A stretch of DNA of 64,000 nt from contig OZ281495.1 in NCBI GenBank assembly GCA_965637545.1, forward strand, positions 20,150,001-20,214,000. The letters run 5' to 3'. The notes beneath the pieces were generated by a model, which searched no databases, was not told the DNA's origin, and worked only from the letters and a program-made list of their open reading frames with translations. Shown here in pieces: positions 5,374-55,086 of this stretch (positions within the stretch are counted from its first letter, which is position 1; each line of letters opens with the position of its first letter). This DNA is from Phallusia mammillata. Its lineage: Eukaryota. Both the position numbers and the translations under genes were made by a program.

Positions 5374-7612
5374 TCAGTCCTCTCCTTCTTCGTGTGGAAG
5401 AGCTTGTAGCGCAGCCATGAAAGCGAATCCCACCAAGAGACACACTGTGTTGGATATTCTGTTGTTTGTTTCATCGTTGAACTCGTGTGGAATGATTTCA
5501 ACGAATATTATGTACACAAACGTCCCCGATGCAAATGCCTAAAATAAACAAGAAAGTTAATGACCAGATTTTTTTGTAGTCTTACATTAAAGCGAGTTGA
5601 TCGTTCTTCCATAATAAATAAGTAGCCTAAACTTTAAGATAAAAAAACTTGCAGTTGAAACAACCCACCTGCATCACTGCAATAAGCTTGTCGACACGAA
5701 CACTGTCTGAATATGAGCTCAATCCTGTTCCCACCCCGATACCGATTGGTGCCATGATTGAAAATATCACCATTGACATTAACACAATTCGAAGCGATGC
5801 TCTGTTGACAAAAAAACTGATCATAAAGACAAGTTCACAATACATCACACTTCCGTGCATTTTTTCATTATACTTCAAAAAATAAATCACAACCTCTTTT
5901 AAAATGGAACGTTAAAGAATAATAAAGAGTAAGAGACGTTTAACTGGAACCTATATGTTTTGTCAACGTTGCTTGATTTTTGCATTTTTAGTTGAGCTTT
6001 TTTTTACACTGTCAAAGTTTTTGTCGTTTACACACAACGTACTTGTTTGTCACCAGGCTCATTCCGTAGCTGAAAGCCAATGTCATCTTATGTATGATGA
6101 CGGCGATCACCAGCGTCCTTAGAGCTGATGCATTCCTCTGGAAACCGATCGCTAAGCCTTCAAACAAGGCATGAGCGGAGAGGGCCAGCAACAAAACCAG
6201 CGCTCGGACGGAAGAGTGTGCCTCGTGATCAAAATGACCATGAGCTTGTTCCTCTTGCAGTGTGGCTTCCGTGTGGGCCGTTGCAATGCTGATTTCGACC
6301 TCTGTGAAAGAGTTAGATTGTCGCACCATGGTGTCATGCTTTTCCGTTGTGTATGATATGGCGGGTGGTGGAACGATGGGTGATGCCGCGCGTTTATCGG
6401 TGGTTGTACATTCCGTGCTCTCCTCCGAAGACTGCCTAAGTGTGTTGTAATTCGCGCTCTTTTCTCGAGACTGAAGTAGTATTGATTTATCTTCACGGTT
6501 GTATTCGAGCACTTGCTTGTTTTCAACTGAAAAAAACACATGTATTTTTACCTTTTAACAATATTGTTATATGTAACTTGCGTTGGTCCTTCCAATATAT
6601 CAGTATTTTGCACGTGCGTTTTTGAAACGTATACAATTTTAACCTTGCTCGTATGGGGATCAAAACACTTTTCGATTCATTACAAAACTAACGCAAATTT
6701 TTAACATGTAACAACACCAACTTGCCAAATTGTGTTTGAAAGGTAAATACCCAAAAATGTTAATGGTGATGTTTAGAATTGTGATTTAAACGTTGCTGGT
6801 TTATACCATGCTTACCTCACATGGTTAAGTCTGCATTTAGCGTTTCCATTCCTAATTTTAGCAAATTTATTTTCTTTATTACACAGTTTTGTGCAATATT
6901 TATTAAACCCACTTGTCGTGCTGGCTTCATTTGTTTCGCTTTTGCTTCCAAACCAACTCATGACCGCCTGTTCGAGAAACAGGACGAAGAAGAAACCGAA
7001 GCATATGATAAGTTCGGCAAAGGGATATTCCAAATCCTCACCGAATTGTTCTACTATCTGCTCCTGGGCCTAAAGGTAAGTGTATAAACGTACTGTGCGC
7101 AGTTAATATTTTAGCAAGGGGCTTAAATTGCATGCACGAAAGGGCTGACAAGTACGATTGATTACATAGCCAGAACTGGAATGGTACAAAATGTCTTTTT
7201 GTGCTACGTCTCCAAAAATACGTCATATTTTGATTTTCCTAACAGGTTAACTTAATTTTTAGCTACCCCCAAAAAATCTTTTTAAACAAGCAAAGACATT
7301 TTTTCACAAACTTCAATATTTTACATGCAGTCTGTGTAGATGGTCATACCTCTGGCAACATGTGCATGAAGAATGTTGCGAAAAATATTCCGGCAGCGAT
7401 GCAGTTCAGAAAGCTCACCAACATATCCCGAAAGTGACTGTCATAACAAAGAAAACCTGTCTTTTATATTCTTTAAAAATATCCTTAAATCTTTACTATA
7501 CTGACCTTGGCGAAAGGCATTTGTTTTTCAACAAAAAAGGCGTAAATCCAGTCCCGAAGCCAACTAAAAGAAGCAAGACCAACAACAGTATTTTTTCGGA
7601 GGCTAAATCCAT
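5374..7612 (-). CDS. ZIP (SLC39A1/2/3-like) zinc transporter
   Basis: Spliced product MDLASEKILLLVLL...LNCIAAGIFFATFFMHMLPE...EYPFAELIICFGFFFVLFLEQ...HGHFDHEAH...LALSAHALFEGLAIG...AVIIHK...AFASGTFVYIIFVEIIPHEF...GED*. Carries the ZIP TM4 HxxxEG and TM5 HK motifs and a His-rich loop. Confidence 0.93.
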
Positions 7613-18512: not shown

Positions 18513-21191
18513 TTTCCGTGAATATTTCGCTTACAATCAATGCAGTTTCTACAAACACTATGTTACCACTGTTGTAGGAGTATTTATTCAATGCTCAGTA
18601 AAGGTCCCGCTACGCTTGGACTGAATCATAGGTTTACTCGAGTCGCGACTTTTATTTAGGCGACTGTCTCGCTGTTTTTTTTCTGCCCCACGTCATTGGG
18701 CACGTGTGCAGGTGTTGACCCAACACACTTTTGATCGTCTTGGGGAATGTGAAGGTAAATCAGATTTTGTCCATTGTATTCGTCTGTAATTTATCCATAA
18801 CAATATTAACACAATAATATGTGATAAAATTTCAAAACTGTATAATAACCGGTCTTTTTAAAATACCATAATCCACCTTTTACGAAATATGAAAGCCCGT
18901 ATTAGTTGTTTGAATACAAAATACACCCATAAACTAATTTGACAAGCACGCTTTTCTTGTGGTCTTACCAGCTGACCAATTTGTTCCGACGAAGTTTTGA
19001 TATTTTTCACCTGAACAGTAAATCAGTTTTAAATCATAGTTCAAAATAATTTGTAACATAATAATTGACTATATACTCATAACAAAATATGTTCGACATC
19101 GCCATAAAATGGCCATAAAAGTGTGCTAATTTATTTTGTTTAAAAAGCAGTAACGATTCTCAAGGCAATATTTGAAAAAACAAAATGCACAAATCTAAAA
19201 TAAAGATTAAAAAGACTGATTTCGTTGCTATTTCCCTCCGCAAAGCTTCTATAATTTTTGAAAAATAATTTGTTGTTTTTGATAACTATAAACACATGAG
19301 CAACACGAACCTAAAATGTGATTTTGATTAAAGAACATTGGGTGGATACATTTGTTTCATAAAAATATCGCGTTTATTTTTTTGTTAAACGAGAAGTATT
19401 AGATTTAAAACACTCGCATTTCATTGGCGCTTCCATACACGCCACAATCTAGTTTTCATTATGTCTTACAATATTCCAAAGAGTACGACTAATAAAACGT
19501 TTTGGCAACAAAACAGTGGTGTTTGCCACACAATGCTTCAATGACAGTTGCCCTGGGCACGTCTAAACTCAACAAGGTTTACTTTAATATCTCATTACCA
19601 CACCACCCGAAAAACAATAAAGCTTGTTGCTATTATATTTTCTATTCCAGGTGTAAATTAAACCACATACGGAGCGTTCACTTCGAAGAATAACGTTTTA
19701 CCAACGACATGAACTTTTTGATGAGCGTTGACGCTTCGACAAGCTTGATAAAACGCGAACACAAAACACAAACAATTCAACACCAACCGCTTCTGTGCCA
19801 TACTATCAAGCAAGCTGTGCCTTAATTAAAGTCTTATTATTTCAGTGTCAGTTTCAATAACAGTTGACTTGTACACAAGGCCAGCACAATCAGGTTTTAT
19901 TTGAATTATTAGCGTCGTTGTTTGTTTTGAACTTTGCATTGTCTATTTCCTTTTGAATCAAAAATGAATTGTTCGATCGTTGCCTTGAAAGCGCACACAT
20001 AAAAATAGGCCACAGAGTTTTCAAAAAGCTTTGCATTTGTATCAACCATTGAACGCTTGCACGTGCGAATGCGACCCCCGTGGAATCAATTTGTCTTTCA
20101 AGACGTGTTTATTGACAAACCTGCCATCCGGTATTAGAATTCCGCGAGTGGCGATGCATTTTAAGGTTTGGCCCCAAGACACCTGGGCCCCACTAATGAG
20201 ACGCTGGAAATACCTACGAGCGACAAACAGAGCTACACCGGTCGGCCATGAAAGCGAAACTTTGGAATCTCGGTGTTCCGGAAAATTGTGATTGTTTCTT
20301 GTTTTGGCAACATCGCCACGTTCGCGTTTTAAGGTTCAACCGCCAAAAGCAGCTTTTCCACTTCAAAATGTCAATTTAGAAGTGGGCCGCAAAACTTGTG
20401 TCCACTGCCCAAGCGCGAAACACTGATGATGATTGACGTTTTATACGCAGCAACATCAGAATAAAATGAAGGAAAAATCTAAGTTATGTTCTTCTAAGTT
20501 ATGCCGAAATGCTATGCTAAAGGCTGCATAGATAATTTACCTACCAAACAGCACATTTTAAGTAATGTGCAGTTTCTCAAGCAAAACAAACATAATAAAG
20601 TGATATGGCTTAAACACCTTTCAAAATTGCAAAACATTTGAGTTTAAAAACATTTACAATGTTAGGATTTGCAATTAAAAAGTCTATAAAGGCGTTTCTG
20701 TGGACAAAAACAGTCGTAACATATCAAACTAGAAATGCGTTTTGCTTATTTAGGTATTCTATATTAAATTTGTACATGGCGGAGTTGTTGAGTGAATATC
20801 CATAAAAAAATAATTTGTTTATTTAAGGTAACTTCTTTGCACATTAATACACCAATATATGACAACTACAAAATGAATGGTCACATTTTACCCGTACAAA
20901 TTGTCACAGTGCGAAGCAGAAAAATTTTATTGCCATTCGACGCTCAAAACAACACGAAATCTAACAAACATTTTTGACAGAAATCTTTTCGCCTGAACCT
21001 TCGTGGTGCCCTTTGCAGCAAATTTTTCTACACTTAACAATGCGCTGTAAATCGCAGTATCGTTTAATGACAATGTGCTTTAAATTATTTCGTTTATTAA
21101 TCCAGTTAATTTAAGCAGGAGCAATTATCACGTTACAATAGAGATTGTTTCAAATGTAAAGAAATTATAGGTAGGCGGTTCGAGACAACCT

Positions 21192-24100
21192 TTAGTCAGA
21201 TGGTTTGGTCTGAAACAAAAACAAAATGTCACACACTATCCCAAACAGATTAGTATAATAGCAATCCTTACCCCGCAATCAGGTGGGACCATGTTTTCAA
21301 AATTACATAATGCACGATATTCATCATACACAGTACCCGGAGGACAGCTGTAGACGTATGGACCGCCGTTGTTTTGTGTACAAGTGTAATATGTGTAGCA
21401 GTCATATTTGTAACTTCCAGGAACACCGTGCTACAATGGAAACCACTGTCTTTACTTGATTTTTGGAAACAAAAACTCAGTACTGACCTGACAGGTTGGT
21501 CCACCGTCTACTGGTGGCACTGCTGGGGTTGTCGTGGTGGTTGTCGTTGGTGACAGAGTTGTAGTACTTGGCTTATCCAAATCTGCAGTCAGAGTGGTTG
21601 CAACTTCATACTGTTAAATATCGCCACTTAAAAAGCAAATACATTCGAAAAGGTTGTCCATTGTTTCAGGCGCAAGTATAGCCCATTAAAAAAAATCGTG
21701 TAACTCGATTTGGACAGACGACTTAAAGTGCTATAGTCGCATGATAATAAGCGGGTAACTTTCTTACCCAATTAGGCGGAGCAACAGTTGGTACGTCGCC
21801 AATAGCAATATCTGCGCATCCGTAAAACTCCTCCTGTGGTCCGCATCCCACACAGCAGTCTTCGACAATGTCAGGGTCAGGGTTAGGATCACAACCATGC
21901 GAGTTTGCTAAAGAATAGGCAAATTCGAAGTATCGGTTATGCAAAAAAATATCTTGTATTTGTGTAGTATTTACAGTAATTCCACAATGACTTCTAATTT
22001 AACAAGTTACCAGTATGGTATCTCCATTGTAGAACGCACTGTGTGCAGGTTAAACCTGGAGGTAACTGAACTTTCGTTTCGTAAACCCAGGGCGGCCCGC
22101 TTTTCGGATCAGCTACGTATTTTGTCTCTCCGGTTTCAAAAATGTTCAGCAAGTTTCTGCCGACAATTGTGCAATGCATTATTAAAGTTGATCGAACACA
22201 GTAAAAACAATAAAAACCAATTCAAAGAAAAGTTATTTAGAGTCCTTATAAGACAGACAAATTTAGATGTTTTAAAAATAACGCTTTTTTAATATACCCA
22301 ATGTGTGCTTCTGTAGCCATCAATGGTAAATTTGGTTTACCGACAGTTTTGGAACAAGACAAGATATTGAATGTTTCAGTTCCTGGAATAACTTCATAGA
22401 AAGTTCGTAATAATGTACAGAAAACCGTAAATACACTCTTTCCAGAAGCCAAAAATTGTCAATGTGCGCAACTTGTCTGTGTAGACACAGAAAGTATATG
22501 TGCTTTTTATTTTTTTATTTTTTATTTTTTTTACGGGGTTCGAACCCAGGATTCTCCCGGGGACGAATCCCGATCAGGTTTTTTATGTCTGTATATGGGT
22601 CAGGCGCGCCAAACCGTTCGGCCAAGCTTTTTATAATATCGTTTAGAACAGGGGTTCTTAACCAGGGGTACATGTACCCCTTGGGGGTACGAAGCACCAA
22701 AGTAGGGGGTACGACAGTCAATGTGAAATTATACATTATTTAGGCATATTTGTGAAGAATGTGTAACAAGTTACTTTGTTATGTGTAGTTGATTTTAATT
22801 GACTGATTGTTGGTGTTCTGTAAATTTTGTTGAACTTACAAGACTGTTTTAATGCATGCATTCAACATGTAAGTTATAAATACACTGAGATTAATTCCCA
22901 TTATTGTTTGCTTCCGTCGGCCATTGTAGAGAGGGGGTACGAGAAAATATCATGAAAGCTCAAGGGGTACAAGCGCTAAAAAGGTTAAGAAACACTGGTT
23001 TAGAATGTATCAGTGCTCCGCAACCGGTGTGCCGCGGCACACTGGTGTGCCGCAAGACGATGCTGGGTGTGCCGCCGCAAAACCGTAACTTTTTGTTTAA
23101 CATTTGTTTTTGTGTATTTTATCATTGTAGCAAAAGATACAGTTCACACCACAAAATTAAAGCTACACTACTCACTACACATTCATGTTTTATTACGTCA
23201 TAATATACTTTATACTGGCTTAATGCAGGGGTCTCAAAACACGCGGCCCGGTGTGGACCAACGAGGGTTTTTGTGCGGCCCGCGAACTAACTTCAAATTT
23301 AGGTGGTTACCTTAGGTGGAATACCCTGTCAGACCACCGATTTTAGGAAACAATCATTCTTTATTAGTAATGGCTAGAAATAAATGGGACGTTTTAATCG
23401 TATGATGGAAATAGGCTGGTCCCTCCTGTTGAAAATCGGCAATTCCAATTGTTGCGGCAAATTTTTTAATTTTTTCGTCATTGTACGCCATTGTTTCACA
23501 CATAGTGGTTTATTGCACTTGTTTTTTTAGTTTGTTACACTCTATATCTGTTTCTTATTTATTGCAATACAAATGTTTTATGTACATGATATGGCATAAA
23601 CGCACGACATTTTTAAATACATAACATTTTTGTTCATGTTACTTTTACCAAAAAGTTCCAACATTACGGCAGTTTACTAATGTTTTTGGCCCTCAAAAAG
23701 TTTAAGACCGATGGCTTAATGCTTCTTTTAGTCTTTCGAAAAATTGGGTGTGGCGCCAAACATTTAAAGCTTGTATGGTGCGACGTGAGTGAAAAAAGGT
23801 TGCGGAGCACTGGTTTAGATACTCCCAATTTGAATTTAAATTGTAAATGTAAACGAAATTACTGATTCAGGCATTCATGTGTAGCTGGCACTTCTGGATT
23901 GTTCCATTCGCACAGACGAAACTCAAAAAATCCCATGTGGTGAGCTGTTAATTCCACTTTAATGTCCATTACTGAACCTGCAACATAAAATAAATAGACT
24001 TTTACCCTAAGAATGGACGGAATATAAAATGTTGTGAACAGACCTGGTGCATAATCGCGTACAATAATTCCTTTCGCATAAGGTCCACCGGCTTCGTGTT

Positions 24101-25371
24101 CTCGGACTCCGTCCCATGGATCACCGCAAATTCCGCATTTCCCACCTTGTTCTTCTTGCTGGTACTATATGCAAGACATCAAACCTTTAAATCAGGGGTG
24201 TGCAACCTTTTTCGGCGGTGGGCCATATAACCAATTTCGGACATCAAGCGAGGGCCACACATTTTTTTCATGTACCGTATTTGCACTTTTTTACACTACT
24301 GTTTGTGCGGCTTGCATTATAATATCATGTCGATATTATTTCCACACCCCTGCGTTTTGTTTTATTTTGCTTTTAAAATCAACGTTAAAATGTTAGGTAC
24401 AAGTAAGTTTCGTCGTAACACTGCCTTTCACAACAAAGTAATTGTTTACGAGACAAAGAGGTATATTACGTCACATTCGGTATAGTACGCAACAAGCACC
24501 TAGTGCGAATAGAAGACCATAGGTCTGGGTGAATTAAGTTCCATGCGCTGGTTTAGCTTATTCTTGTTACGTATAGCAAATTAGGAGTTTTACCGAAAAC
24601 TAATCAGAGTGTTGTTGAGGGCCACACCAAATGGCTTGGCCGGCCGGATTGTGGCCCGCGGGCCGCGGGTTGCACACCCCTGCTTTAAATAGTCCAATTT
24701 AATCAAATTCCTTAAAGGGAGGCACATTTTTTGGTAGAGCTACTAACACGGTGCCTCCTGGGTGATCCAAAAGTCCTTATTTTCGATAGGTGGCATAAAG
24801 AGCTGAATTATTTATTTAGCGGCTAAAGAGGGTTGGTTTAGGATGCAAATGTTTAAAAATTTTACATTAGTAACTATTTTTTGGGGTTAGTTTATTTTGG
24901 GTTTTATATTTAAATGCTAATACCTTAACCCGACCCTAATGGCCCTAACCGTTATCATTTTTTGAGATATACTGTTTTAAAAATTGTTTTTTTATCAAAG
25001 ATTATTTTAAACTCTTTTTCAGTATCTGAGCATTTACAGACCTGAAATCCACCACAAAACAGTTGGTTGTCGTTGTAGTTTGCTTTCACCATAGATTTGT
25101 ACGGTTTAATAGCTGGATCAGTTTCTTTCACTCTCCACATGCTTGAACGACGTGGAGGCTCCAAAAGACGTCCATGAGAATTCACATCGCAAACAAGAAA
25201 TGCACCAAGAAATGCCACTGAGGAAAAAGGCGTGTTATTATTCTTTATAAGTGCGAAAAAATACCTCAGTATGTTTTGGTTACTTTTAAATATATATAAA
25301 AATTCGCTTTAAAGTTGTGAGGATCAAAACTCGTTTACAATGAATAAATGCTGTTTACCTGTTAGAATCAT
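21192..25371 (-). CDS. AA15-type lytic polysaccharide monooxygenase, copy 1 (signal peptide, LPMO, Thr-rich linker, CBM14/peritrophin-A)
   Basis: MILTVAFLGAFLVCDVNS|HGRLLEPPRRSSMWR...NYNDNQLFCGG...GKCGICGDPW...ELTAHHMGFFEFRLC...LTCTQCVLQWRY...GCGPQEEFYGCADI; then a T-rich linker and six-Cys CQHG...DCYTYYTC...YSCPPGTVYD....CNF....PDCG-TKPSD*. Nine coding exons with GT-AG introns. Confidence 0.92.
22511..22625 (-). mobile_element. Short tRNA(Leu)-like SINE with A-rich tail
   Basis: On the - strand: A box tggccgaacgg, B box ggttcgaaccc, A-rich tail; 9-bp TSD gctttttat (22502-22510, 22626-22634). Confidence 0.75.
22649..22997. mobile_element. hAT-type MITE
   Basis: TIR caggggttcttaacc...ggttaagaaacactg; exact 8-bp TSD gtttagaa. 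Confidence 0.88.
23011..23812. mobile_element. hAT-type MITE containing a nested MITE
   Basis: TIR cagtgctccgcaacc...ggttgcggagcactg; TSD not clean. Confidence 0.8.
23226..23713. mobile_element. Nested hAT-type MITE
   Basis: Left end caggggtctcaaa, degenerate right end tttaagaccgatg; exact 8-bp TSD gcttaatg. Confidence 0.78.
24193..24682. mobile_element. hAT-type MITE
   Basis: TIR caggggtgtgcaacc...ggttgcacacccctg; exact TSD ctttaaat. Confidence 0.9.
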
Positions 25372-25448
25372 TTTCGTGTTTCTTAACCAAGGCCTCCTCA
25401 AACGACTACAAGTCTTTATTTCTCTGGATTTGCAGAAGTTTTCAGAAC

Positions 25449-25455
25449 ATTTATA
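25449..25455 (-). promoter_or_regulatory. Candidate TATA box of LPMO copy 1
   Basis: TATAAAT on the - strand about 80 bp upstream of the ATG; the same motif sits at the same position in copy 2 (31258-31264). Confidence 0.55.
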
Positions 25456-25643
25456 CCAAAATTCAACTGTCGTAATAGCTAATAAAATAAAACATTAAAA
25501 TGTCGTTGACTAGTTTCCGCCAAGTGCAGTAGTTAAACTGTATTGTTCTGTCAGTTTACACTTCAAGCCGTGAAAATCTCCACATCATTATGTCAATTTA
25601 ACATCGGTTAATTCATTACTCAGCGGAAACTTCAGGTGCCATA

Positions 25644-25905
25644 CATGGGCGCCGCCACGTAGGGGCAAGAGGGGGCACTTGCCCCCCCTTGGAATTTCAG
25701 TGTACCTCAATTTAACATATTTAGCAGCAAACCTAATTAAAGTGGCAGCGCGGGGATTTGTTACATCGTTATAAATGCTTTAACTTTTAGGCAACTCAAT
25801 TGTGAAGTACACGATTTATGGCTTCATATATAACAAATTCTTTGATGCGGTAAAGTATCAGCCAAAATTTGCCCCCTCTTGCAAAATTTTCTGCCGGCGC
25901 CCATG
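25644..25905. mobile_element. hAT-type MITE in the LPMO copy 1 upstream region
   Basis: TIR catgggcgccg...cggcgcccatg; exact TSD gtgccata. Confidence 0.88.
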
Positions 25906-27143
25906 GTGCCATATCAAAGCTCAAGAACATTTTTTTTCGTCTGTCATCACACACTTAAGATCACAGCGGTAATTGTAAAAAAAGAACTCAGGTCACCTCC
26001 ATCGAAAACAGAGTCATTCCGTTGTTTGCGTTTTTACTGCTTAAGTTTATGTCATTTTCAAGGTTAGTTAAGGTCGTTTTTTTGCTGTCGTCACCTTTTT
26101 TGTGGGTTTAAGCAGGGAGTGGTTAAACGAAATAGCCTACTTGACACTTGACACCCATTGGTTTTGAAGTTGTAATCTGCGAATATTTAATGTTGCGAAA
26201 CAGCTAACCTTAATGATTAAAGGGTGCGAAGTTCTGGTTAAATACAAATTTACCCACAATTTAGAACGCACTGGCTGATGCAACAAGCAAACACTGTACA
26301 GACCAAACATTTTGTTTGTGGTGCCACTGTTGGTAAAAGCTACGATGGGATTTTGCATACATATACGTCCACTTTAGGACATATAACAGGGTGTAACTGA
26401 TGTGGCCATCATATCAGTGATGATGGCATGAGCATTTGCCGAAACCTTTCAAAAATAAAGTACGTCTTTTTTACGTCTATCTGGGCCGCTATTTTCATCA
26501 TTAAACTTAAAATGAAAAAGTTTTTCCAATCAAGGTACTTATACCATACTTACCTACAATTTTGGGATGTGCGGTGACTTTTGGAAGTATGAGACTACAA
26601 TAGTTTTTGTGTTGCGTTTCTAACTGTTGGATCTTTGGATATAGTTTTTACCAATGAGCGGCCTTGTGAAGAAACCGTCCCGAACGTCATCTTTTACCTG
26701 TTCACCACTGTTTGATGTGAACGAGAATGTATAACATCCAGATACGTAAAAAAAATGTAGGCGCGTTTTTCTTTCTGTGTGACGTAATTACGCTTTTAGA
26801 ACCGATGTGTGTTCATGTGACGTTCATCTTATTGACGTTAGTACAAACAAGTATAGCATATAGGCTTCTGAATAATAGTGTGTTACACGGGAATAAAATC
26901 TAGCTAATGGGAAATTTACGCCCGCGACCCTATTTTTGTTGTGCGCCTGCTCAAATGAAATGACCAAACCACCAAAAGTAATGCTTTTTCCAACTTGCTC
27001 CCTACTTTTTACAAGGTACTAAACAAATGTATGGGACACAAATTTATAAAAGGTATTTAATTGTTGATTGGTCAGTCGTTACACAAATGGTCATCATCAA
27101 CGGACATCGCCAAGTTTATTTGCTTGTATTACTATATATAGAA

Positions 27144-27373
27144 CAGTGGTTTCTTATCCGGTGAAAATTATGTACATGTATACGGAAATTATATTAGTCA
27201 ATGGTACCTACATTTTTGTTTTAAGTTTCACTCAAATATCTAAAGGTCATAAATCTAAATATTTAGTCACAAACTTAAGTATTTTTAATCGAAAAGCCCA
27301 AAAAACGAGGGGCAATTTAAACTTAGTGACTGATATCAGTTGGAAAACACGCTAAGAAGTTTAGGAACCACTG
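27144..27373. mobile_element. hAT-type MITE
   Basis: TIR cagtggtt...aaccactg; TSD atatagaa/atgtagaa. Confidence 0.75.
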
Positions 27374-29167
27374 ATGTAGAACCTGCGAAGTTTCACCCAC
27401 AACGATAAAGTCGCTACCAAATCCATATTGAATGACAAAGGCAAGAGAACGAGAAACAAAAGAATCGTCGCTAAAATGATGCGTGGCGCTCTGGCGCTAG
27501 GCGAAAAGAAATTAAATATTACTTTAAAACGCTTTCTGCATATAAACCCACAGTTGAATTGATTCGGGCGTACAAATAGAATGGCGGCTTTCTGTTAATT
27601 GCAAAAGCGCTTTTTTCGTCACCTTTTTTCGTCGCTTCTTTCGAAGTTTATTTTTACGCCACCTAAATTTTTGTCTGATGGTACTAGAACTAGATGTATC
27701 TTTCAGATTTGTTGAGGGTAGTGGTTCTCAAACTGTTTAAATTTTTCGTCATGGCGCTCGTTTCGCAATTCTTCAAGCATTATAGCGGCCCAAGCTATAT
27801 ATCTTGCTAAAAATGAACATAACTTTGTAAAACAAAACCTGTAGTTAACAACTATAAGTAAATTATTCCTTACAAAAGTATTCGAACAACAGCACACGCA
27901 GGATGAGTTTTGTTTTGCTTCTTAAGATTACTTTAAGGGGGAATAATCCAATGGCAGTTTATTACGTCACAAACGAGTGTCGTTGAAACGACTCTAGAAC
28001 AATATAAATATTGTGCGCAAACCATACCTTTTCTGTTACTTGAAATGGAATAAAATTCTCTTTTTGTTACAGGATCCTCGTTACACTTATTACTTCTATG
28101 CCTATATGATTGCAATATTTAATAATACAAAAAAGTAGAAATTCTTTAAGCTGCTCTCGGTCCCTTTAAATTCGCTTTATTTGCCCCTCAGGGACCACAG
28201 ACCCCAATTACAAAACATTTGGTTTCCAACAAACCTCTTATTGCGAACCGGTCCTACAAATATCCGTGGTTCGGTGCATGGATTTTTTTCATATTTTAAC
28301 AACCAACAATTATCAATAAGTTTGTTAAATGGGATTCTTTGAGTTGCTTTGTTTCTAAAGGTTGTCGGGTAAAAATTGTCACTAAAATTTCGTGTTACAT
28401 AAGTCAACAGGAAGCGAGACCTTTTTTTCGCAATTGATGGCTACATTACAGGCAGAGGCTTGGCAGCCAACAATTTCGGGAGAGGTCAAATATTTTGTGG
28501 CCTAAAATCGTTTGCGTCTGTCTCAAAACGAAAACACAAGTTTGGCGACCTCTGGTAAAGAGTGTATAAGCATCAAAAAGCCAATAGTTTGCACACAATT
28601 TACCCATGATTGCTCTGGTTTGTGACGTAACAAACTTTGAGATATGTAAAGTATACTCACGAAAATAAGTGAAAAATAATCTTGCGTGTTTTTGTAGAAA
28701 TAACTCGACCAGGATTTGATTGCCTTTTAGTTAACTGCTGAAATAGATCTAATTGTATTTATAGAATTGAGTAAGCGGTGTAACAGACATTCATCGAGCG
28801 GTTTAACAAAACTGTTTATGACGCCATGATCCTGGTTTTTAGGCTTTTTGTCGATTACTTAGTTAGGTTTTCATTGTAGAAAGCTCTATAGTCAACTAAC
28901 AATTAATGCCTTGTTTTTGGGTGGCCCCGTAACAAATCCTTTAGAGATCGGCACGGGTCGCGAAATATTTGCTTTGTGTACGTCTGAATCTATTAATTAC
29001 ATTTTTTACACATTAGGAGCAATGACGATTTTTTAATTTCTCTCGTTGTGAACTTGATTGATTGTTACACGATCAATTATACTTTAAATGTACAGATTGC
29101 TTCGAAGAAGTTAAAGATAATAACCAAGAGCAGAATTAAAGATATATAAGTTGCTCCATTTTCACCA

Positions 29168-31181
29168 TCAAGCAGTTGTCTTGGTCTAAAACAAAAACAA
29201 AATGTTATTGTAAAACCTAAAGTAGAATTCGGCGTAATGGCGGTGCTTACCCCGCATTCGGGTGGGACGTTACTTTCATAGTCACATATCTGGCGATATT
29301 CATCATACACTGTGCCAGGAGGGCAACTGTATACGTATGGACCGCCGTAGTTCACTGTACAAGTGTAGTATGTTGTGCAATCATATTTGTACTTTCCAGG
29401 AACACCGTGCTAAAATGGAAATCACTTTTAAGATTGCATTTCTTCTGTACAGAAATTTAACACTGACCTGACAGGTTGGTTCACCGTCTACTGGTGGAGC
29501 TACTGGGGTTGTCGTGGTGGTAGTTTTAGTGGGGGTTGTCGTTGGTGACAAAGTTGTTGCGCTTGGCTTACTTGGCTCAGCAGTCGGGGTAGTTGCAACT
29601 TCATTCTGTTAAATATCGCCACATAGAAAGCAAAAACATTTGAATGCAGGGCCGAAAAAGGAACAGAATATCCCGGTGACTTTGCTCTCTTACCCAATTG
29701 GGCGGAGGAAGAGTCGCAACGTCACCAATAGCAACATCTGCACATCCGTAAAATTCCTCTTGTGGTCCGCATCCCACGCAACAATTCCCGTCCGAGTCGC
29801 ATTCATACGTATTTCCTGATAAAATATCAAAATCGAGTAGTTTTTGTCAAACCTAAGGTCTAAGTTGTAGACAGTGCACACTGTTTCGACCTATAAGGTC
29901 TCATCAGTATTATTGCAAGTCACTTGCTTCCACAAGGATGGTTTAATTCTAACACAACTTACCCGCATGATATCTCCATTGCAGAATACATTGTGTGCAG
30001 GTTAAACTTGGAGGTAACTGAACTTGTATGTGGTAAACCCAGGGCGACCCGCCGTCCGGCTTAGCGAAGTATTGAGTTTCTCCGGTTCCGACGAATTTCA
30101 ACAAGTTCCTGTGGATAGTTACAAAGCTCCAGTAAACTTTATTGAAACTGATTACAACGAAAACACTATTGAAAATAAGAATTGTAAAGTTTGTTTGCTG
30201 ATGTGGGAGTTCGCAAGTCTAACGTTGTTCGAAATAATGTAAATAAAGAAAATGTACGAATAAACAATTATTAACTTATGTTTTAATGCCTAAATGAGTG
30301 TAAGCCTGATGACATTTTACTTAGTTTGACAAAATTAAAGGGATTCACTGCAAATCTCAAATATATCACAAGAATATTTTTTCCAATTGTGCAACTTGTC
30401 AATATAATGTTCACAGGTTCGCGTATTTAGAATTTAGACTCTAAAAAGTGTGAAAACATTTACTGATTCAGGCATTCATGAGTGGCTGGCACTTCTGGAT
30501 TGTTCCATTCGCACAGACGAAACTCAAAAAATCCCATGTGGTGAGCTGTCAATTCTATTGTAATGTCCATCACTGAACCTGTAACGCACACAAAGTAGAT
30601 TTGTACTATAGGAATATACGGAATGTAAAATGTTGTGAACAGACCTGGTGCATAGTTGCGTACTATAATTCCTTTCGCATACGGTCCACCCGCCTCGTTT
30701 TCACGAACTCCGTCCCATGGATCTCCGCAAATTCCGCATTTTCCATCTAGGTTCTTTTGATGCTACAGAAGGTCAAGTTGAAACGTTTAATCTAGCACAA
30801 CCATTCCATTTGGTGCATGAAATCTCAGACATGTTTGGATTTTATGGAAAGTATCAAAAACTATTTTACAGACCTGATATCCACCACAGAACAGTTGGTT
30901 GTCGTCATAATTTGCTGTCACTATGGATTGATACGGTTTAATGGCTGGGTCAGTTTCTTTCACTCTCCACATGCTTGAACGATTGGGAGGCTCCAAAAGA
31001 CGTCCATGCGAATTCACATCGCAAACAAAAAATGCAACAAGAAATGCCACTGAGGAAGAGAAACAAATTCAACTAAGTATAACCATCTTACGATGGAATT
31101 GGAGACACATTTTTATTTACGTTAAAGCTTTTTGTACATTTTCCTCTTCAAAAATAATAATATGTTACCTTTTAGAATCAT
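29168..31181 (-). CDS. AA15-type lytic polysaccharide monooxygenase, copy 2 (signal peptide, LPMO, Thr-rich linker, CBM14)
   Basis: MILKVAFLVAFFVCDVNS|HGRLLEPPNRSSMWR...NYDDNQLFCGG...GKCGICGDPW...TAHHMGFFEFRLC...CTQCILQWRYHAGNTYECDSDGNCCVGCGPQEEFYGCADV...YSCPPGTVYDEYRQICDYESNVPPECG-TKTTA*. Same intron positions as copy 1. Confidence 0.92.
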
Positions 31182-31257
31182 CTTCGTGTTTCTAACCAAG
31201 GGCACTTAAAACAACCACGAGTCTTTGTTTCTCTGGGTTTGCAGAAGTTTGCAGAAA

Positions 31258-31264
31258 ATTTATA
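31258..31264 (-). promoter_or_regulatory. Candidate TATA box of LPMO copy 2
   Basis: TATAAAT on the - strand, positionally conserved with copy 1. Confidence 0.55.
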
Positions 31265-33118
31265 CCTAAATTCAAGTGTCGTAATTGCCTATAAACTAAA
31301 GCATTAAAATGTCGATGACTTGTTTTCCACCAAGCACACTACTTTAATTGTATTGTAACGTCAGTTTACTCTGCCAGTCATGAAACTCTTCTCATCATTG
31401 TATAAATTTTATATCGCTTTTATTCGATGGGCAACGGAAACTTAAAAGGGCCATTAGTAAAAGTCGTTATTAGTAAAAACCGTATGCGTAGTACCACAGC
31501 AGACACCGTAAAAAAATCTTAGGTCACCGACACCGCACACACAAAAGGTTTAGTTGTTAACCAGTTTGCGGCTTAAAATTTATTTCGTTTTAAGGTTAGG
31601 TCACTGGGATTATTTGGTACTATCGTCTTTAGTGTGCGTTAAGATTTCAACCGGGCGAGTTTTCTCTTTCTTATTTTAATACTTGTCAGCCACGACACTT
31701 GACGCTTCTGAACAAAACAATATTAACGACTTGGTACAATACTTCAACAGTTTGAGTTGCTAATGCGAAGATTGAAGACAAATTCAGCCACAGAACACAT
31801 TGTTTATTGCAACTAGTCAAGCGGAAAAATTACGAAACTCTTCATCGGCGACAGTAGTTGCCCAAAACTAAGCTCACAAGAAATACCAAACACTGTACAG
31901 ATATAGAGACGAGAAAGCAAATCGAATTTCACAAAACACGTCTAAAGTTTGTGACCAGAAGGTAGCAGTACTGCAAGACAAGACAAAAATGGGCTGCTTT
32001 CAAAATGCTCAGCATAGAACTTTTTCAATATCGTTGCAGGTCGTTTGAAACTGGAGCAACATAAATGTACAGTGATGGGTACATGGGAATTCTCACGTAT
32101 GGTACATGGGAATTCTCACATGTGCTTGTGACCAAACATTTGTTTTGTGGTAGGGGAGGAGGAAAGATTAAATGTAAATTTGAAAGCATTCACTTTACAA
32201 GCAAACTAAAGGGGAGTTTTATCGGTAATTAGACCAGAAGCTGGGCCGGTATGCACAACACAGAGTCTAATTGGATCCTTTGTTAGTTTCAAAGTGGTAC
32301 GCAAAAAGTGGGTTTGGTTACTGGGACCAAAAATGATTTCTGGACCTTAAAACAAATTGAACCCTTCATGTCGCAAATGGGATTCCGTTCTCGGTTCGTT
32401 TATGCTCGTTTCCACAAGCCCTTATTCCAAAAAAAACAAATATCACATTATGCTTGTGATAATTGTTTTTTTTTTCAATAAAGGGCTTGTGGAACATCTT
32501 TTCTGCGCACATACAAGCAATTAATTGAACATTGTGTGTTACAAGCCACAAGTATGTGCAGGAAATTTATTTTTGCGACCCTGCTTCAGCTGTATACATG
32601 CTTGCGTTTTTTTATCCAGTCTTGGCTGCATTGGTCTGCTTGATTGAAATACCAAGCTTATTCATACATGAAGTAAAGGCAAAAAAATCACATTGTTGAA
32701 TACGTTTTAATAAGATAGATTGGTAAATTTATACAAAGGGACCCAATTAGCAAACCGTAATATTTTTTTTTGCAGAAACATTATGTTTCGGGTATTAATC
32801 AAATTCGGGTAATAATTGTGGTGCACCTGTAAAAGGTTATGTAAATTGCTAAGTCATTCAATGCATAAATATTCCGAAATCGCGCAATGACAATACTATG
32901 TAACTAGTGAATGATAGAACTCTGAAAATCAGAGCAATAATAATCAACAGACATTGTCAAGTCAATCTGCTTTTACATAACTCACAACAACCGAGTCCCT
33001 ACGAACAACCACATTGAGTGAAGAGGGGGAAAGTAAGAGAAACGAAAGAATCGGCGTGAAAATAAAATGAAGATAACACGTGAAGTACTGGCGCCTTCGA
33101 CCGGCGAAAAACTTCAAA

Positions 33119-47015: not shown

Positions 47016-47860
47016 AAGGCGGCATTTTGTGCGCATGCAGGGTTTAGGGCAAAAACGATGTTTTGGGAGTGATTTGTAAAGAATTGTTGGTAAAACTGAT
47101 TTAAAATGTACACCGCCAGGTGGTGCTCTATTTCTGTAAAATTGGTTTAGCGGTATGTTTGGCATCAAACATTTTTGGTTTGGCACTTTTTTGTTGTGTT
47201 TGGCGCTTTTTTGAGAGTTTTTGGCACTATTCTGCGTTTTTTTATCTGGCAGCCCTGTATGGAGATGAAGGTTAAAAAAAAGGTTTTCGACACTTTGCAA
47301 ATAAACTAAATTCTCAAAACAAGCACAAATCAAATTTATACGTAAAGAAAATATGAGTTCCGAATTTTTTTGCCCTTAGAAATCGACACTGTTTAAATTC
47401 AATTACGTCAAACCATCCATGCATGACTGAGCATCATTGTTACTCAAGCGTAACTCTTAATTGTTAAACCGATCATACGCTGTAGTAGATTGAGCTTCGA
47501 GCATTTTTTCCTACGTTTTTCGTAACCCTTTTTTAGGACGAACCGTCTAGGATACTATTACCAATACCCAAAAGGTCGTCAAAACATAAAGTGCAACCAG
47601 CAGCTTATTTAAACAAACATCTGCTTTTAAATACATATACTTTATATCGTAGTTGGCTTGAGTTAAACTGTGTTGGTGCTGCCTTATGCGTTCGTGAACG
47701 TCATCAGCCATCATTTCTCGTCCAAGTAGGTTAACCGTTGTGTTTGTGACATTTACGACATGCACCACATGTGTTCTGTGCGTCTAGACAAGCATTCGTT
47801 TTGTTTAAAGAGGGTTGCAAAATTGATTAACCGACTTTATTGAAGACTGCTGGAATAAGA

Positions 47861-50800
47861 ATGCATCAAGACATGACACAGAAGTGCGAAAAGAAAGATG
47901 TTGCTCGGGTCAGGAAAACATTTATTCATCGGCAAGTTTACTGCCTTGGAGTTTCGACAGCTTGTATGTTTGCGGCCTTTGCCGGGGTCCTGTGTTTGCA
48001 GTCATCTATCAACGTCGCCGAAGAACTGGGAACTACCACATTGGCAGTAGCTTACGGGACAACCGTTGCATGGAACTTACTTGCAACGTCGACAATGCTC
48101 AAGGTTTTAGGTCCAAAAAAGTCTATTCTTGTTGGTGACTTTTTCTATTTGGCATATACTTTGGCAAACATATACCCAAGTAAGCACTGTTTTTTGTTGC
48201 ACACGGGGTCCCAAATCTCTCGCGGATCAAAAGGTTCTTTTTTATGTAATCTTTCCTAGAGCATGAAGCGTTAAGGCTAAGTAAACACAATCCGGTTACA
48301 TGTGCATTGACACTACTGTGAGGGTTAAAGCGAATTCGTCGTACTTTGCCAGCACAAGTGTTTGCATTGAAACGTTTGCTTTTCACAGCACCCGTGACAG
48401 CAGCCTAAAGACAAGCACCAATATTGACTCGACTCTTAAGCGCGCTTTAATTATTATCTATTTCTATTTAGATAGAGTCAAAGGTTTGCAAAGGCCTGTT
48501 TCCAACCTATTCAACAAATATTTTTAATCAAAAAATATAAAATGGCATCTTTGTTTTCGCTCATGAGCTTTAAAATCTAACTACACATTTTTCGAACAAG
48601 ACATAAAACGATTTTGTGTTTGCAGGTTTTGCGGCGCTTGTTCCCGCTTCGATACTGCTAGGGATCGCACAATCTGTCACTTGGTCCAGCTTTCCGCTTT
48701 TCACTGGCCATTTTGGCAAGCAATATGCCATTGTCAAGCGCAGAGAGGGAAAGGCCGATCATAAAAACGCGACAACGGCCGAGGAGGATTACACTTGCCG
48801 ATTTGCTGGACTTTTCTTTTCGATCGAATCGGGATATCTGGTGTGTATCATACAACATATGTCCATTTGAAACAAGTGTTTTCGAGTATTTAATCATGCT
48901 GGACTCGAGTGTCGTGTACAATATATTTTGTCACACGCGATTTCCTTCAGAAAGTGTGGCTGCGTAAATTCAAATTTGAGCAGACATAACTGTGCTGCGG
49001 CAACGATCAGGCATATATTTTGTGGATAATTACTAGGGCGATTATTTTTTGACCTAAAAAACGAAAAATTGTGACTTTAAAAAAGATTTTTGACAACATT
49101 TGGACCTATTAAGAATTCAAGTAGTTAAGTTACGCATTCATGCACGAAAAGTTAAAATATGGCTGTAGGGCGTGTAGGCTAATCTAACTAGAGCGAAAGA
49201 ATGCGCAAAAGTCCAACAGAAGGTCAAAAATCTGAACACAGACCTAGCCTATTCTAAAAAGGGAAATCAGCTAATTAAAAATCACTGCCATAAAAAAAAA
49301 AAAATCAAAAACTGCAGCTAAGACACAACGAAAATTGTTTAATGCATTTATCTAAATAAACGAAAGATACATGAAGTATCCAAAGCAAAACCGAATCAAG
49401 AGGTGCACCTAACCTGCAGCTGCCATAAAATGACTTGGGACCTACCAAGATTTTGCACGTTTTGAGGTGTGTTGAGCATCACGCCATATCAGCCTAATTA
49501 TTTCACTCACTCGATGGTTTATAATTCACATTAAATATAGACAATTGGCCATTTACAACAGTATAAAGTAGGCTACAAGGTGTAAAATGAAAAGTTTGCT
49601 GACAGTGCACCCTCTACAACACCACGACAATGCAGTTTGTAGGCTAAACAATTTTAACTTTGTAAAAATTTTGACTTTTAAAGAATTTTGACAATTTTTG
49701 ACCTATTCTAAAAAATTTGACCAAATTTTGACTTTTTTGACAAAATAATCGCCCTAATTATCACAAATTATAGTTTAACACTAAACTGGCAGAATTTTAT
49801 AAGCGTGGCTTTTGTTAACAGATCTTTGGAAATTTGACCTCTTACGCGATTTTAAGATTTTTTCAGTCGGAACCGAGCAAACTCAGTGGGTAAGTTGCTT
49901 TAAAATTGCATAGGGAAATATTCTATCTGCCAAAAAACATCCCCACTATATATTACTGTAACTCAAATTTGCACTTTATCCCTTAGAAACGATTCCTTAT
50001 CTTACATGTTTGGGACAAATAATACTGCAAATAGCACACAGAAGTTATGTGGCGCATATCAGTGTAGCTTTAAAGAAGATATGACATCAAATGATTCGCA
50101 AAAGTATGAAATTCAAGACTGGGAAACGCGAATTTGGCTTTTTCTTGGATTTGCTTTTATGCAGCTTATCGCAATCGGTATGCATGTATTTCTACTGCAC
50201 GACCCTAGCAGTTACAACTGGGAATTAGCTTTTCATGAGGCAAAAGATTTCGAGAAGGAGTTAACTGTGGACGAGCAATGTAGCAGTATTTCCGTAGACC
50301 TTTCCGATACGAAAATATGCAATCCACCACACGTAAGTTTGTCAAACATATAAGAATACTTAAGTTTTATACTTGTGAAGGTACAACTAACTATTCCTCA
50401 ATGCTATTGGTTATAAATCTATTATATATTAGTCATGCACATTTATTGCGCAACATTGTCAAAAGTCATCTCAATTGTGATGTCACAAAGCCATCATCAT
50501 AAACTTTACGATGAAGTGCCACTTAATGACAGACCATAAGCATAAATATTACAGGGTGAAACAAAAGCAACTTTCAGAACATAAAACAAAACGTTATTTG
50601 CTGTAGTATTTACCATGCGTTGCTCTTTAAGTGTGTTTAAATTTTGGGTTTTAACTGATAGTAGCGTCCTTTGACACAGTTTTTGACACTTATCCGAAAA
50701 TCTTTTTTTACAGCACATCAAGGAATGCGGAAACGGTGTATTGGCAACACTACGACAACTGACCGTCGTTCAGCAATTGTTGGTTGTGCCGTTTAACTTA

Positions 50801-53826: not shown

Positions 53827-55086
53827 ATGCGGGTCAAATGCCAAGTTGAAGTGGTGAACAGAAATGTTGCATCACAAGGGATGAGAGGTGGGTGTGGAAA
53901 AGCTGCTCAAGCAACATTATTCCTGGCAAGAAAACCGGGAGATGTTGTTTTTTTAATGTACTGCACTGCACGAGACAAGCAAGGAGTTAAGTACAAGGTT
54001 AAAGAAAACATCAAACAAATTTTCGGGAAGTTTTTGTCTGATGGAAAAGCAACCATTCGTCTGAATGAGCCAATGGTTGATTTATGCATTAAAAAGGCTG
54101 ATCCGATTGAACTGAAACGTATTTTAAATGCACTTGCAATGGCACACAAAGGACAAGCGTTATCTGGTCAAAGTGTTCTTTCATCTATGGCACCTGCCAA
54201 AACAAAGCATATCGAAACACCTAAAACAAAGATGAATATTTCCACGAGAAAAGACTACCCAACAACTACATCATTTCCAACAAAGCTTGAGAAACTTAAG
54301 GTAAATGACTGTCAGTTAGTAAAAGTTGATTCAAGGATACTTGCTTTAAAATATTTAACATCACTGGATTTGAGTTCGAATAAAATCAAGATTATACCCG
54401 AAGCTATAAGTGAAATGCAGTCATTGGCTGAACTGGTTTTGTCTCATAACTTACTGACAGAACTTCCAAACCTTTGTAAAAAGTCTTCAATGCTTTGCAC
54501 AACTTTAAGAACTTTACATCTGGACAACAACAACTTATCCAGTTTGCCACATTGCATTTGTTTGTTAAGTGAACTGTGGCAACTTCAACTTAGCCACAAC
54601 AAGTTAAAAGAGTTACCCAAGGAAATTGGAAACTTAAGCAAGTTGAAACGATTTGGAGCTTCACATAATCTTCTCACCTATTTGCCATATTCATTTACTA
54701 ACCTTCGTCTGGAGAAACTGGATTTGTTTATGAACAATTTTGGTGATCATGATAGGCCACTGAAAACGAATGGAGGATCAATATGCAAAATTATATCACT
54801 GAAAGAATCCTGTGCACGAGTTGTAAGAAGAAAAAGAATGTTTTTCAATAATAAAGAACTATATTCTCATGTGATTATCAGGTATCTTAGGTGTGGTAAA
54901 CAGTGCCCATGTACAACATACTGCTTTGAGTCATATGTGTATTTTATGGTAGATTTTGATCTAAAGCAAATATGTGAAAATCTTGTAGGTTTAGATTCAT
55001 CAGGTCGCACTAATGTGATGGTAGAAGCTGTTATCTGCTCTCATGAATGTATGGCAAAATATTTGGGACGGGGTTTGTTTCTGTGA
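53827..55086 (+). CDS. LRR1: Leucine-rich repeat protein 1 (CRL2 substrate receptor), single-exon CDS
   Basis: 419-aa ORF: MRVKCQVEVVNR...KENIKQIFGKFLSDGKATIRLNEP (LRR1 N-terminal PH-like region), LRR repeats, BC-box-like SLKESCAR, and a C-terminal Cys cluster ending CSHEC. Confidence 0.92.
   Translation: MRVKCQVEVVNRNVASQGMRGGCGKAAQATLFLARKPGDVVFLMYCTARDKQGVKYKVKENIKQIFGKFLSDGKATIRLNEPMVDLCIKKADPIELKRILNALAMAHKGQALSGQSVLSSMAPAKTKHIETPKTKMNISTRKDYPTTTSFPTKLEKLKVNDCQLVKVDSRILALKYLTSLDLSSNKIKIIPEAISEMQSLAELVLSHNLLTELPNLCKKSSMLCTTLRTLHLDNNNLSSLPHCICLLSELWQLQLSHNKLKELPKEIGNLSKLKRFGASHNLLTYLPYSFTNLRLEKLDLFMNNFGDHDRPLKTNGGSICKIISLKESCARVVRRKRMFFNNKELYSHVIIRYLRCGKQCPCTTYCFESYVYFMVDFDLKQICENLVGLDSSGRTNVMVEAVICSHECMAKYLGRGLFL

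Follow-up and report, generated by a model that had tools for sequence, protein, structure and literature searches.

A tandem pair of genes for probable secreted AA15 lytic polysaccharide monooxygenases with a CBM14 module in the ascidian Phallusia mammillata

Gene Structure

We analyzed a stretch of 64,000 nucleotides from the genome of Phallusia mammillata (contig OZ281495.1, positions 20,150,001 to 20,214,000; the whole stretch is referred to as the window, and position 1 is its first letter). Two genes that lie there in the same orientation on the minus strand, gene 1 (31181-29168) and gene 2 (25371-21192), almost certainly belong to family AA15 of the lytic polysaccharide monooxygenases (LPMO) and carry an appended CBM14 module. 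Both genes were read from the bases and rebuilt by a script, and the sequence of the window is free of runs of N. The exons of the two genes are as follows:

29168-31181, minus strand: gene 1, nine-exon AA15 LPMO-CBM14 gene, 334 amino acids (direct reading, script check)
31181-31169, 31049-30874, 30762-30645, 30578-30464, 30108-29963, minus strand: gene 1, exons 1 to 5
29815-29694, 29605-29468, 29409-29251, 29185-29168, minus strand: gene 1, exons 6 to 9
21192-25371, minus strand: gene 2, paralogous nine-exon AA15 LPMO-CBM14 gene, 334 amino acids (direct reading, script check)
25371-25359, 25217-25042, 24158-24044, 23977-23863, 22156-22011, minus strand: gene 2, exons 1 to 5
21907-21768, 21610-21488, 21430-21272, 21209-21192, minus strand: gene 2, exons 6 to 9

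All 16 introns of the two genes begin with GT and end with AG, and the two genes agree in their intron phases. The coding sequences are each 1005 nt long, specify 334 amino acids, and have no internal stop codons. Exon 1 is in both genes a mini-exon of 13 nt, made up of the ATG codon and three and a third further codons. The original prediction had described two intact, co-oriented, nine-exon genes, and the rebuilt models, with their open frames and canonical introns, agree with that description; its outer coordinates were also exact, since position 21192 is the final base of the gene 2 stop codon and position 31181 is the A of the gene 1 ATG. Gene 2 is twice as long as gene 1 solely because of its repeat-enlarged introns 2 and 4. 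These two introns (window positions 22500-24900) contain GC-rich palindromic repeat insertions, for example at approximately 24600-24690, 23230-23300, and 23040-23110.

The similarity of the two loci extends upstream of the coding sequence. In a blastn comparison, genes 1 and 2 shared a 5' block of 607 nt, 76% identical, which includes exon 1, intron 1, and exon 2, together with the flank given below. The duplicated flank of ca. 260 nt is a probable shared promoter and 5' untranslated region. Candidate polyadenylation signals could be read downstream of both stop codons:

31182-31443, minus strand: 5' flank of gene 1, copied upstream of gene 2 at 25372-25632 (blastn of both loci)
29032-29037, minus strand: candidate poly(A) signal of gene 1, ATTAAA, 131 nt past the stop codon (direct reading)
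21093-21098, minus strand: candidate poly(A) signal of gene 2, AATAAA, 94 nt past the stop codon (direct reading)

An alternative model, in which the last exon of gene 1 is read in another frame (open reading frame 29077-29355), was rejected, for it needs a non-canonical donor and has no counterpart in gene 2. Over positions 29077-29190 the alternative frame codes for a hydrophobic C-terminal tail that resembles a glycosylphosphatidylinositol-anchor or transmembrane signal; the resemblance is probably due to chance.

Domains and Catalytic Residues

Similarity searches were conducted exon by exon for both genes, with public orthologues used as full-length proxies, while the spliced models served for the frame check, pairwise comparison with homologues, alignment, tree construction, and calculation of dN/dS (the ratio of nonsynonymous to synonymous substitution rates). 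The following parts of the proteins were recognized:

30995-31181, minus strand: gene 1, predicted signal peptide of 18 amino acids (encoded by exon 1 and the first part of exon 2), with VNS as its last residues just before His1
29694-30994, minus strand: gene 1, AA15 catalytic domain, from His1 to approximately residue 225 (remainder of exon 2 to exon 6)
21768-25162, minus strand: gene 2, AA15 catalytic domain, from His1 through exon 6 (sequence, partial Pfam LPMO_10 matches)
29468-29605, minus strand: gene 1, exon 7, Thr/Pro-rich linker that closes with the first CBM14 cysteine (composition)
29251-29409, minus strand: gene 1, exon 8, CBM14 (peritrophin-A) with five of its six cysteines (Pfam CBM_14)
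21272-21430, minus strand: gene 2, exon 8, CBM14 (Pfam CBM_14, 1.7e-8, 34.9 bits)

Per-exon phmmer searches with gene 1 exons 2 to 6 returned the same top PDB match in each case, the Thermobia domestica AA15 enzyme 5MSZ, and the matches were collinear over its residues 1-193. Exon 2 corresponded to residues 1-33, exon 3 to residues 42-76 (8e-5), exon 4 to residues 78-116 (3.5e-7), exon 5 to residues 138-160, and exon 6 to residues 166-193 (3e-4), while the nearest AA10 chain reached just E 0.33 against a gene 1 exon. When single short catalytic exons were compared with the Pfam LPMO_10 profile (PF03067), scores of 15-19 bits were obtained versus the cut-off of 23 bits; the partial matches for gene 2 fell in exons 4 and 5, and a six-frame stretch across gene 1 exons 5 and 6 scored 24.1 bits. 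CBM_14 was matched well above the Pfam cut-off of 22.1 bits by exon 8 of gene 1 (4.3e-11, 43.2 bits) as well as by that of gene 2 (see above).

The leader of both proteins ends in VCDVNS/HGRLLEPP (the slash marks the predicted cleavage site) and consists of a basic n-region and a hydrophobic core of 10 residues. Val at position -3 and Ser at position -1 agree with the usual cleavage rule. The histidine that follows the leader of gene 1 aligned with His1 of mature TdAA15A (5MSZ) and is invariant in 55 homologues; predicted secretion would thus expose His1, as had been proposed. His116 of the precursor, which is the second histidine of the TAHH motif, aligned with His91 of 5MSZ in another invariant column, and Phe211, of the GPQEEF motif, aligned with the axial Tyr184. 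According to Sabbadin et al. 2018 (PMC5823890), His1 and His91 form the copper brace of TdAA15A, with Tyr184 as the axial residue, and both axial Tyr and axial Phe are described within AA15. The axial Phe was considered as an unusual feature relative to Tyr184 of TdAA15A, but this was rejected: Phe is the common animal state, being present in 16 out of 16 tunicate sequences compared and in most animal AA15s compared, and it had already been discussed in 2018 (PMC5823890).

The catalytic domain of the gene 1 protein contains 12 cysteines, and its linker contains 15 Thr and 11 Pro in 47 residues. In each protein, the CBM14 cysteines are at positions 275, 287, 293, 305, 318, and 328; exon 7 encodes the first. 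In an AA15 alignment of 55 sequences, all 31 invariant columns were retained by both proteins, which deviated at two near-invariant glycines only. The motifs that had been listed at the outset (VNS/HGRL, TAHH, GPQEEF, the Thr/Pro-rich linker, and the six-Cys CBM14) were all found in both genes, and the assignment to AA15 LPMO with CBM14 was upheld by the collinear exon matches to 5MSZ and by CBM_14 scores above cut-off in the two genes. Membership of the window proteins in AA15 and CBM14, as judged from their sequence, is well supported, and the combination of gene structure and motifs that both genes present is far beyond chance.

Homologues, Fold, and Gene Family

Of the full-length homologues, Styela clava XP_039266276.2 is the closest; it shares 52% identity with gene 1 over the entire protein and matched both Pfam profiles (LPMO_10, 1.6e-18; CBM_14, 4.5e-8). 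LPMO_10 scored 68-75 bits in the full-length orthologues. Orthologues with LPMO_10 and CBM_14 from Ciona, Styela, Clavelina, and Oikopleura are present in NCBI and UniProt as "uncharacterized" proteins. One of them, Clavelina lepadiformis LOC143446325 (P0164), matched 5MSZ at 1.2e-46, with no AA10 match at E<0.01. The AlphaFold model of this orthologue has a mean pLDDT (predicted local distance difference test) of 83, with most of the catalytic domain above 90. It was superimposed on 5MSZ with a TM-score of 0.90 (E 1.3e-22, root-mean-square deviation 2.5 A), AA10 structures being far behind, and the protein compared is separated from gene 1 by 0.62 substitutions per column in the tree.

The proteins encoded by genes 1 and 2 are 76% identical. 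The synonymous divergence (dS) between the genes is 0.47, and dN/dS is 0.24 overall and 0.21 in the catalytic domain. The low dN/dS indicates that both copies have been kept under purifying selection, and both are probably functional. Identity between the paralogues varies by exon, from 95% in exon 4 to 67% in exon 5 and 62% in exon 6. Exon 6 of gene 2 codes for a loop that is six residues longer and lies directly before CCVGCGPQEEF, near the axial residue. The divergence is thus centered on exons 5 and 6, at window positions 29694-30108 in gene 1 and 21768-22156 in gene 2.

A maximum-likelihood tree of the catalytic domains placed the window genes as sisters (support 100/97), with Clavelina LOC143446325 as their nearest neighbor. 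All 16 named tunicate sequences formed, with two environmental ones, a single clade (96/90), which lay within the AA15s of other animals. From the sisterhood of the two genes inside the tunicate clade we conclude that the pair arose by a lineage-specific tandem duplication of a gene common to ascidians.

Further members of the family were found when the assembly (240 Mb, 312 contigs) was searched with the Styela protein as a query. A second array, at C3:27080240-27097253, holds four AA15 genes, one on the plus strand and three on the minus strand, whose exon pattern is as in the window pair. These genes have a TAEH brace motif and QEEFY, and at least two of the four have CBM14-like C-termini. 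The AA15 family of the P. mammillata genome is therefore at least six genes strong, in two arrays (2 + 4). A whole-genome search with PF03067 yielded 2 matches only, which is an undercount caused by the short exons; it was the Styela protein query that recovered the family.

Host Genome and Neighboring Genes

The host had been guessed to be a tunicate, which proved correct. The intronless LRR1 open reading frame of the window is identical (100% over 419 amino acids) to the P. mammillata UniProt entry A0A6F9DBY7, the next match, from Ciona, being 55% identical, and the host is thus P. mammillata, a phlebobranch ascidian (Ascidiacea, Phlebobranchia). In addition, two loci in which GT2 (PF13632) is followed by GH6 (PF01341) were found in the assembly, with both domains on one strand and separated by 3-4.5 kb. 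Among animals, the GT2-GH6 cellulose synthase fusion is known from tunicates only. Ascidians are usually described with one cellulose synthase gene (CesA) and a separate GH6 gene. The two P. mammillata loci have diverged from each other, and the second copy may merit a look. The loci and the neighbors of the LPMO pair are as follows:

C3:28480812-28484498, same strand for both domains: GT2-GH6 locus (Pfam profile matches)
C6:17808396-17813296, same strand for both domains: GT2-GH6 locus (Pfam profile matches)
53827-55086 of the window, plus strand: LRR1, intronless, PH_LRR1 and LRR
6012-6539 of the window, minus strand: exon of a ZIP zinc transporter
47840-48259 of the window, plus strand: exon of an UNC-93-like gene (weak match)

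Among the neighbors found in the window, there was no chitin- or cellulose-related gene adjoining the LPMO pair.

Mode of Action and Substrate

Our preferred reading is that the locus carries tandem functional genes for secreted AA15 LPMOs with CBM14, which act most likely on chitin; we give it a probability of about 0.7. Cleavage of the signal peptide after VNS (Ser18) would make His1 the mature N-terminus. Through its amino group and imidazole, His1 would form with His116 a histidine brace that binds one copper over the axial Phe211. When provided with a reductant and O2 or H2O2, the flat face of the enzyme would oxidize a glycosidic carbon of crystalline chitin and so nick the chain; characterized AA15s oxidize C1. 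The O-glycosylatable Thr/Pro linker would join the catalytic domain to the C-terminal CBM14, and the latter may hold the enzyme on chitin. The substrate would be either the chitin-nanofiber membranes of the animal's own gut or chitin in filtered food.

Chitin is, on the sequence evidence, rather likely to be the main substrate. It is favored because CBM14 is the module appended, because the axial residue is Phe in the window proteins and in all compared tunicates, and because ascidian guts contain chitin. Sabbadin et al. 2018 (PMC5823890) regard CBM14 as a module specific for chitin, setting it against CBM1 for cellulose, and ascribe an axial Phe to most chitin-active AA10s and to TdAA15B, under the heading "chitin-specific LPMO"; an axial Tyr, which is typical of the digestive enzymes expanded in Thermobia, is there called "reminiscent" of cellulose-active AA9s. 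The gut membranes of Ciona have a chitin-nanofiber frame, in which CBM14 proteins are present (PMC6109156). Tunic cellulose, which had been put forward along with chitin in the original prediction, is less likely than chitin as the substrate, and a role in the tunic is not favored by a chitin-specific module and an axial Phe.

Several results weigh against the preferred reading. The contigs from four presumed RNA runs (X7, X13, X15, and X19) covered no exon in window positions 25000-30990. A search across sequencing runs recovered the locus from DNA runs only, and the RNA-like runs contained almost none of its sequence words; since the four runs are small and their tissue and stage are not specified, this is absence of evidence rather than evidence of silence. 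No LPMO is listed in the portion of the Ciona gut chitin-membrane proteome table that was searched (part 3 of the supplement), which speaks against a resident role in that membrane. The fold, moreover, was compared through an orthologue at the distance from gene 1 given above. The RNA-run contigs matched short repeats only, at 25643-25906, 26392-26449, 27192-27232, and 29861-29908. The pieces at 29861-29908 (in intron 5 of gene 1), 25643-25906, and 26392-26449 occur inside many RNA-run contigs, at high word depth and with unrelated flanks; they are probably a dispersed, transcribed repeat family.

If one or both copies were silent or decaying duplicates, the lack of RNA contigs on their exons in all four presumed RNA runs would be expected, as would the fact that the 120 best database homologues of the Styela protein include none from Phallusia, even though UniProt contains the neighboring LRR1. 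We hold this to be very improbable, since the frames are open over nine exons with canonical splice sites, dN/dS is 0.24 at a dS of 0.47, the invariant residues have all been kept, and the 5' flank is conserved. The sampled RNA, moreover, was probably embryonic, and genes of the gut or the adult would escape it.

A different role for intact genes would be action on cellulose, either the animal's own tunic cellulose, through oxidative remodeling of the CesA product, or dietary algal cellulose. The two GT2-GH6 loci of the CesA type are in keeping with such a role, and one AA15, TdAA15A, is reported to cleave cellulose as well as chitin. The tunicate LPMO orthogroup has been labeled cellulose degradation in the Didemnum genome paper, by annotation only, and AA15 is seemingly limited to tunicates among chordates (PMC8704543); in the AA15 list of Sabbadin et al. 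(PMC5823890), Oikopleura is the sole deuterostome among the taxa looked for. However, the appended module is CBM14 and not a cellulose-binding CBM, the axial residue is Phe and not the Tyr of the expanded Thermobia digestive set, and a domain of this Phe type is the rule in molluscs, annelids, and arthropods, animals that do not make cellulose. We consider action on cellulose unlikely. More doubtful still is the wider claim that the AA15-CBM14 clade of tunicates, apparently the sole LPMO lineage that chordates have kept, acts on self-made extracellular cellulose or on a chitin/cellulose composite (tunic, or gut membrane with embedded fibers). If action on self-made cellulose were true, these proteins would be the first animal LPMOs to have such a substrate, and the oxidative partner of a CesA acquired by horizontal transfer.

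The proteins could also be mainly chitin-recognizing defense or adhesion factors, directed, for example, at fungi or chitin-bearing parasites or organizing the gut barrier as VCBPs do, with the LPMO domain used for binding or redox chemistry and not for the turnover of chitin in bulk. AA10 proteins of host-microbe interactions (GbpA, CbpD, and fusolin) are among the structural neighbors of the Clavelina model, and the gut chitin of Ciona is an immune barrier with CBM14 proteins (PMC6109156). Expansion of the family in tandem arrays, of two and four genes, and concentration of paralogue divergence in exons 5 and 6 (62-67% identity versus 95% in exon 4) would suit defense as well. But both histidines, QEE-F, and all invariant columns have been kept under purifying selection, as an active enzyme needs, and we judge a defense role improbable. 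Active, secreted enzymes directed chiefly at chitin remain the reading that we prefer.

Comparison with Known Systems

The family, its fusion to CBM14 in a tunicate, and its spread across tunicates are already published. Sabbadin et al. 2018 (PMC5823890) refer to 11 Oikopleura dioica AA15 entries, all with CBM14 (legend of Supplementary Figure 4), and mention tunicate AA15-GH18 fusions. Parra-Rincon et al. 2021 (PMC8704543) found an LPMO orthogroup, ENOG5028N9R, in every tunicate studied and in none of the other chordates compared. The novelty claimed for the locus therefore holds in part. No biochemically characterized (expressed or assayed) chordate LPMO was found in the literature searched, as had been supposed, but tunicate AA15-CBM14 proteins were reported in 2018 (PMC5823890) and the orthogroup in 2021 (PMC8704543). 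The discovery is a modest one, with orthologues already in public annotations. The window gene models, which come from a laboratory ascidian, do provide a starting point for the study of LPMO roles in the sister group of vertebrates; roles to ask about are turnover of the chitin barrier in the gut, digestion of chitin from plankton, defense, and remodeling of the tunic. The tandem pair lends itself to a natural comparison, since the two copies have diverged chiefly in exons 5 and 6.

The window proteins resemble TdAA15A and TdAA15B of Thermobia domestica (PDB 5MSZ; PMC5823890) in that His1, the second brace histidine, and GCGPQEE(F/Y) align exon by exon. They are like TdAA15B in their axial Phe, the corresponding residue of TdAA15A being Tyr184. 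Unlike the Thermobia enzymes, which consist of the catalytic domain only, they add a Thr/Pro linker and CBM14, and their catalytic domain has 12 cysteines versus the 10 given as conserved in arthropod and mollusc AA15s in the same paper (PMC5823890). And while Thermobia is a firebrat, the host of the window genes is a chordate.

The axial Phe and GPQEEF are also shared with group-I LPMO15 of insects (development and moulting) and with midgut AA15s, such as Drosophila DmAA15A/B. For insect AA15s, remodeling of endogenous chitin structures, including the peritrophic matrix, is proposed in PMC5823890. The insect proteins compared carry GPQEEFR(A/S)C and, unlike the window proteins, lack CBM14. 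Identity to the one arthropod (a spider) with which the window genes were compared is ca. 50% in the catalytic domain.

The closest likeness is to proteins of other tunicates. The Oikopleura dioica proteins, from the same subphylum, have the AA15 plus CBM14 architecture according to the legend cited above, and an Oikopleura LPMO_10+CBM_14 protein (P0274) fell inside the tunicate clade of the window genes and also has TAHH. Whereas the Oikopleura and orthogroup entries have been catalogued only, with no assay of function, the window genes are a recent ascidian tandem pair. The unnamed ascidian orthologues (Clavelina LOC143446325, Styela clava LOC120341781 and LOC120339509, Ciona savignyi H2ZB..., and Ciona intestinalis LOC104265352 and LOC100181283) are like the window genes in combining LPMO_10 with CBM_14 in 333-376 amino acids, with TAHH or TAEH and GPQEEFYGC. 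They differ in that, according to the tree, the window pair was duplicated after its split from the Clavelina lineage.

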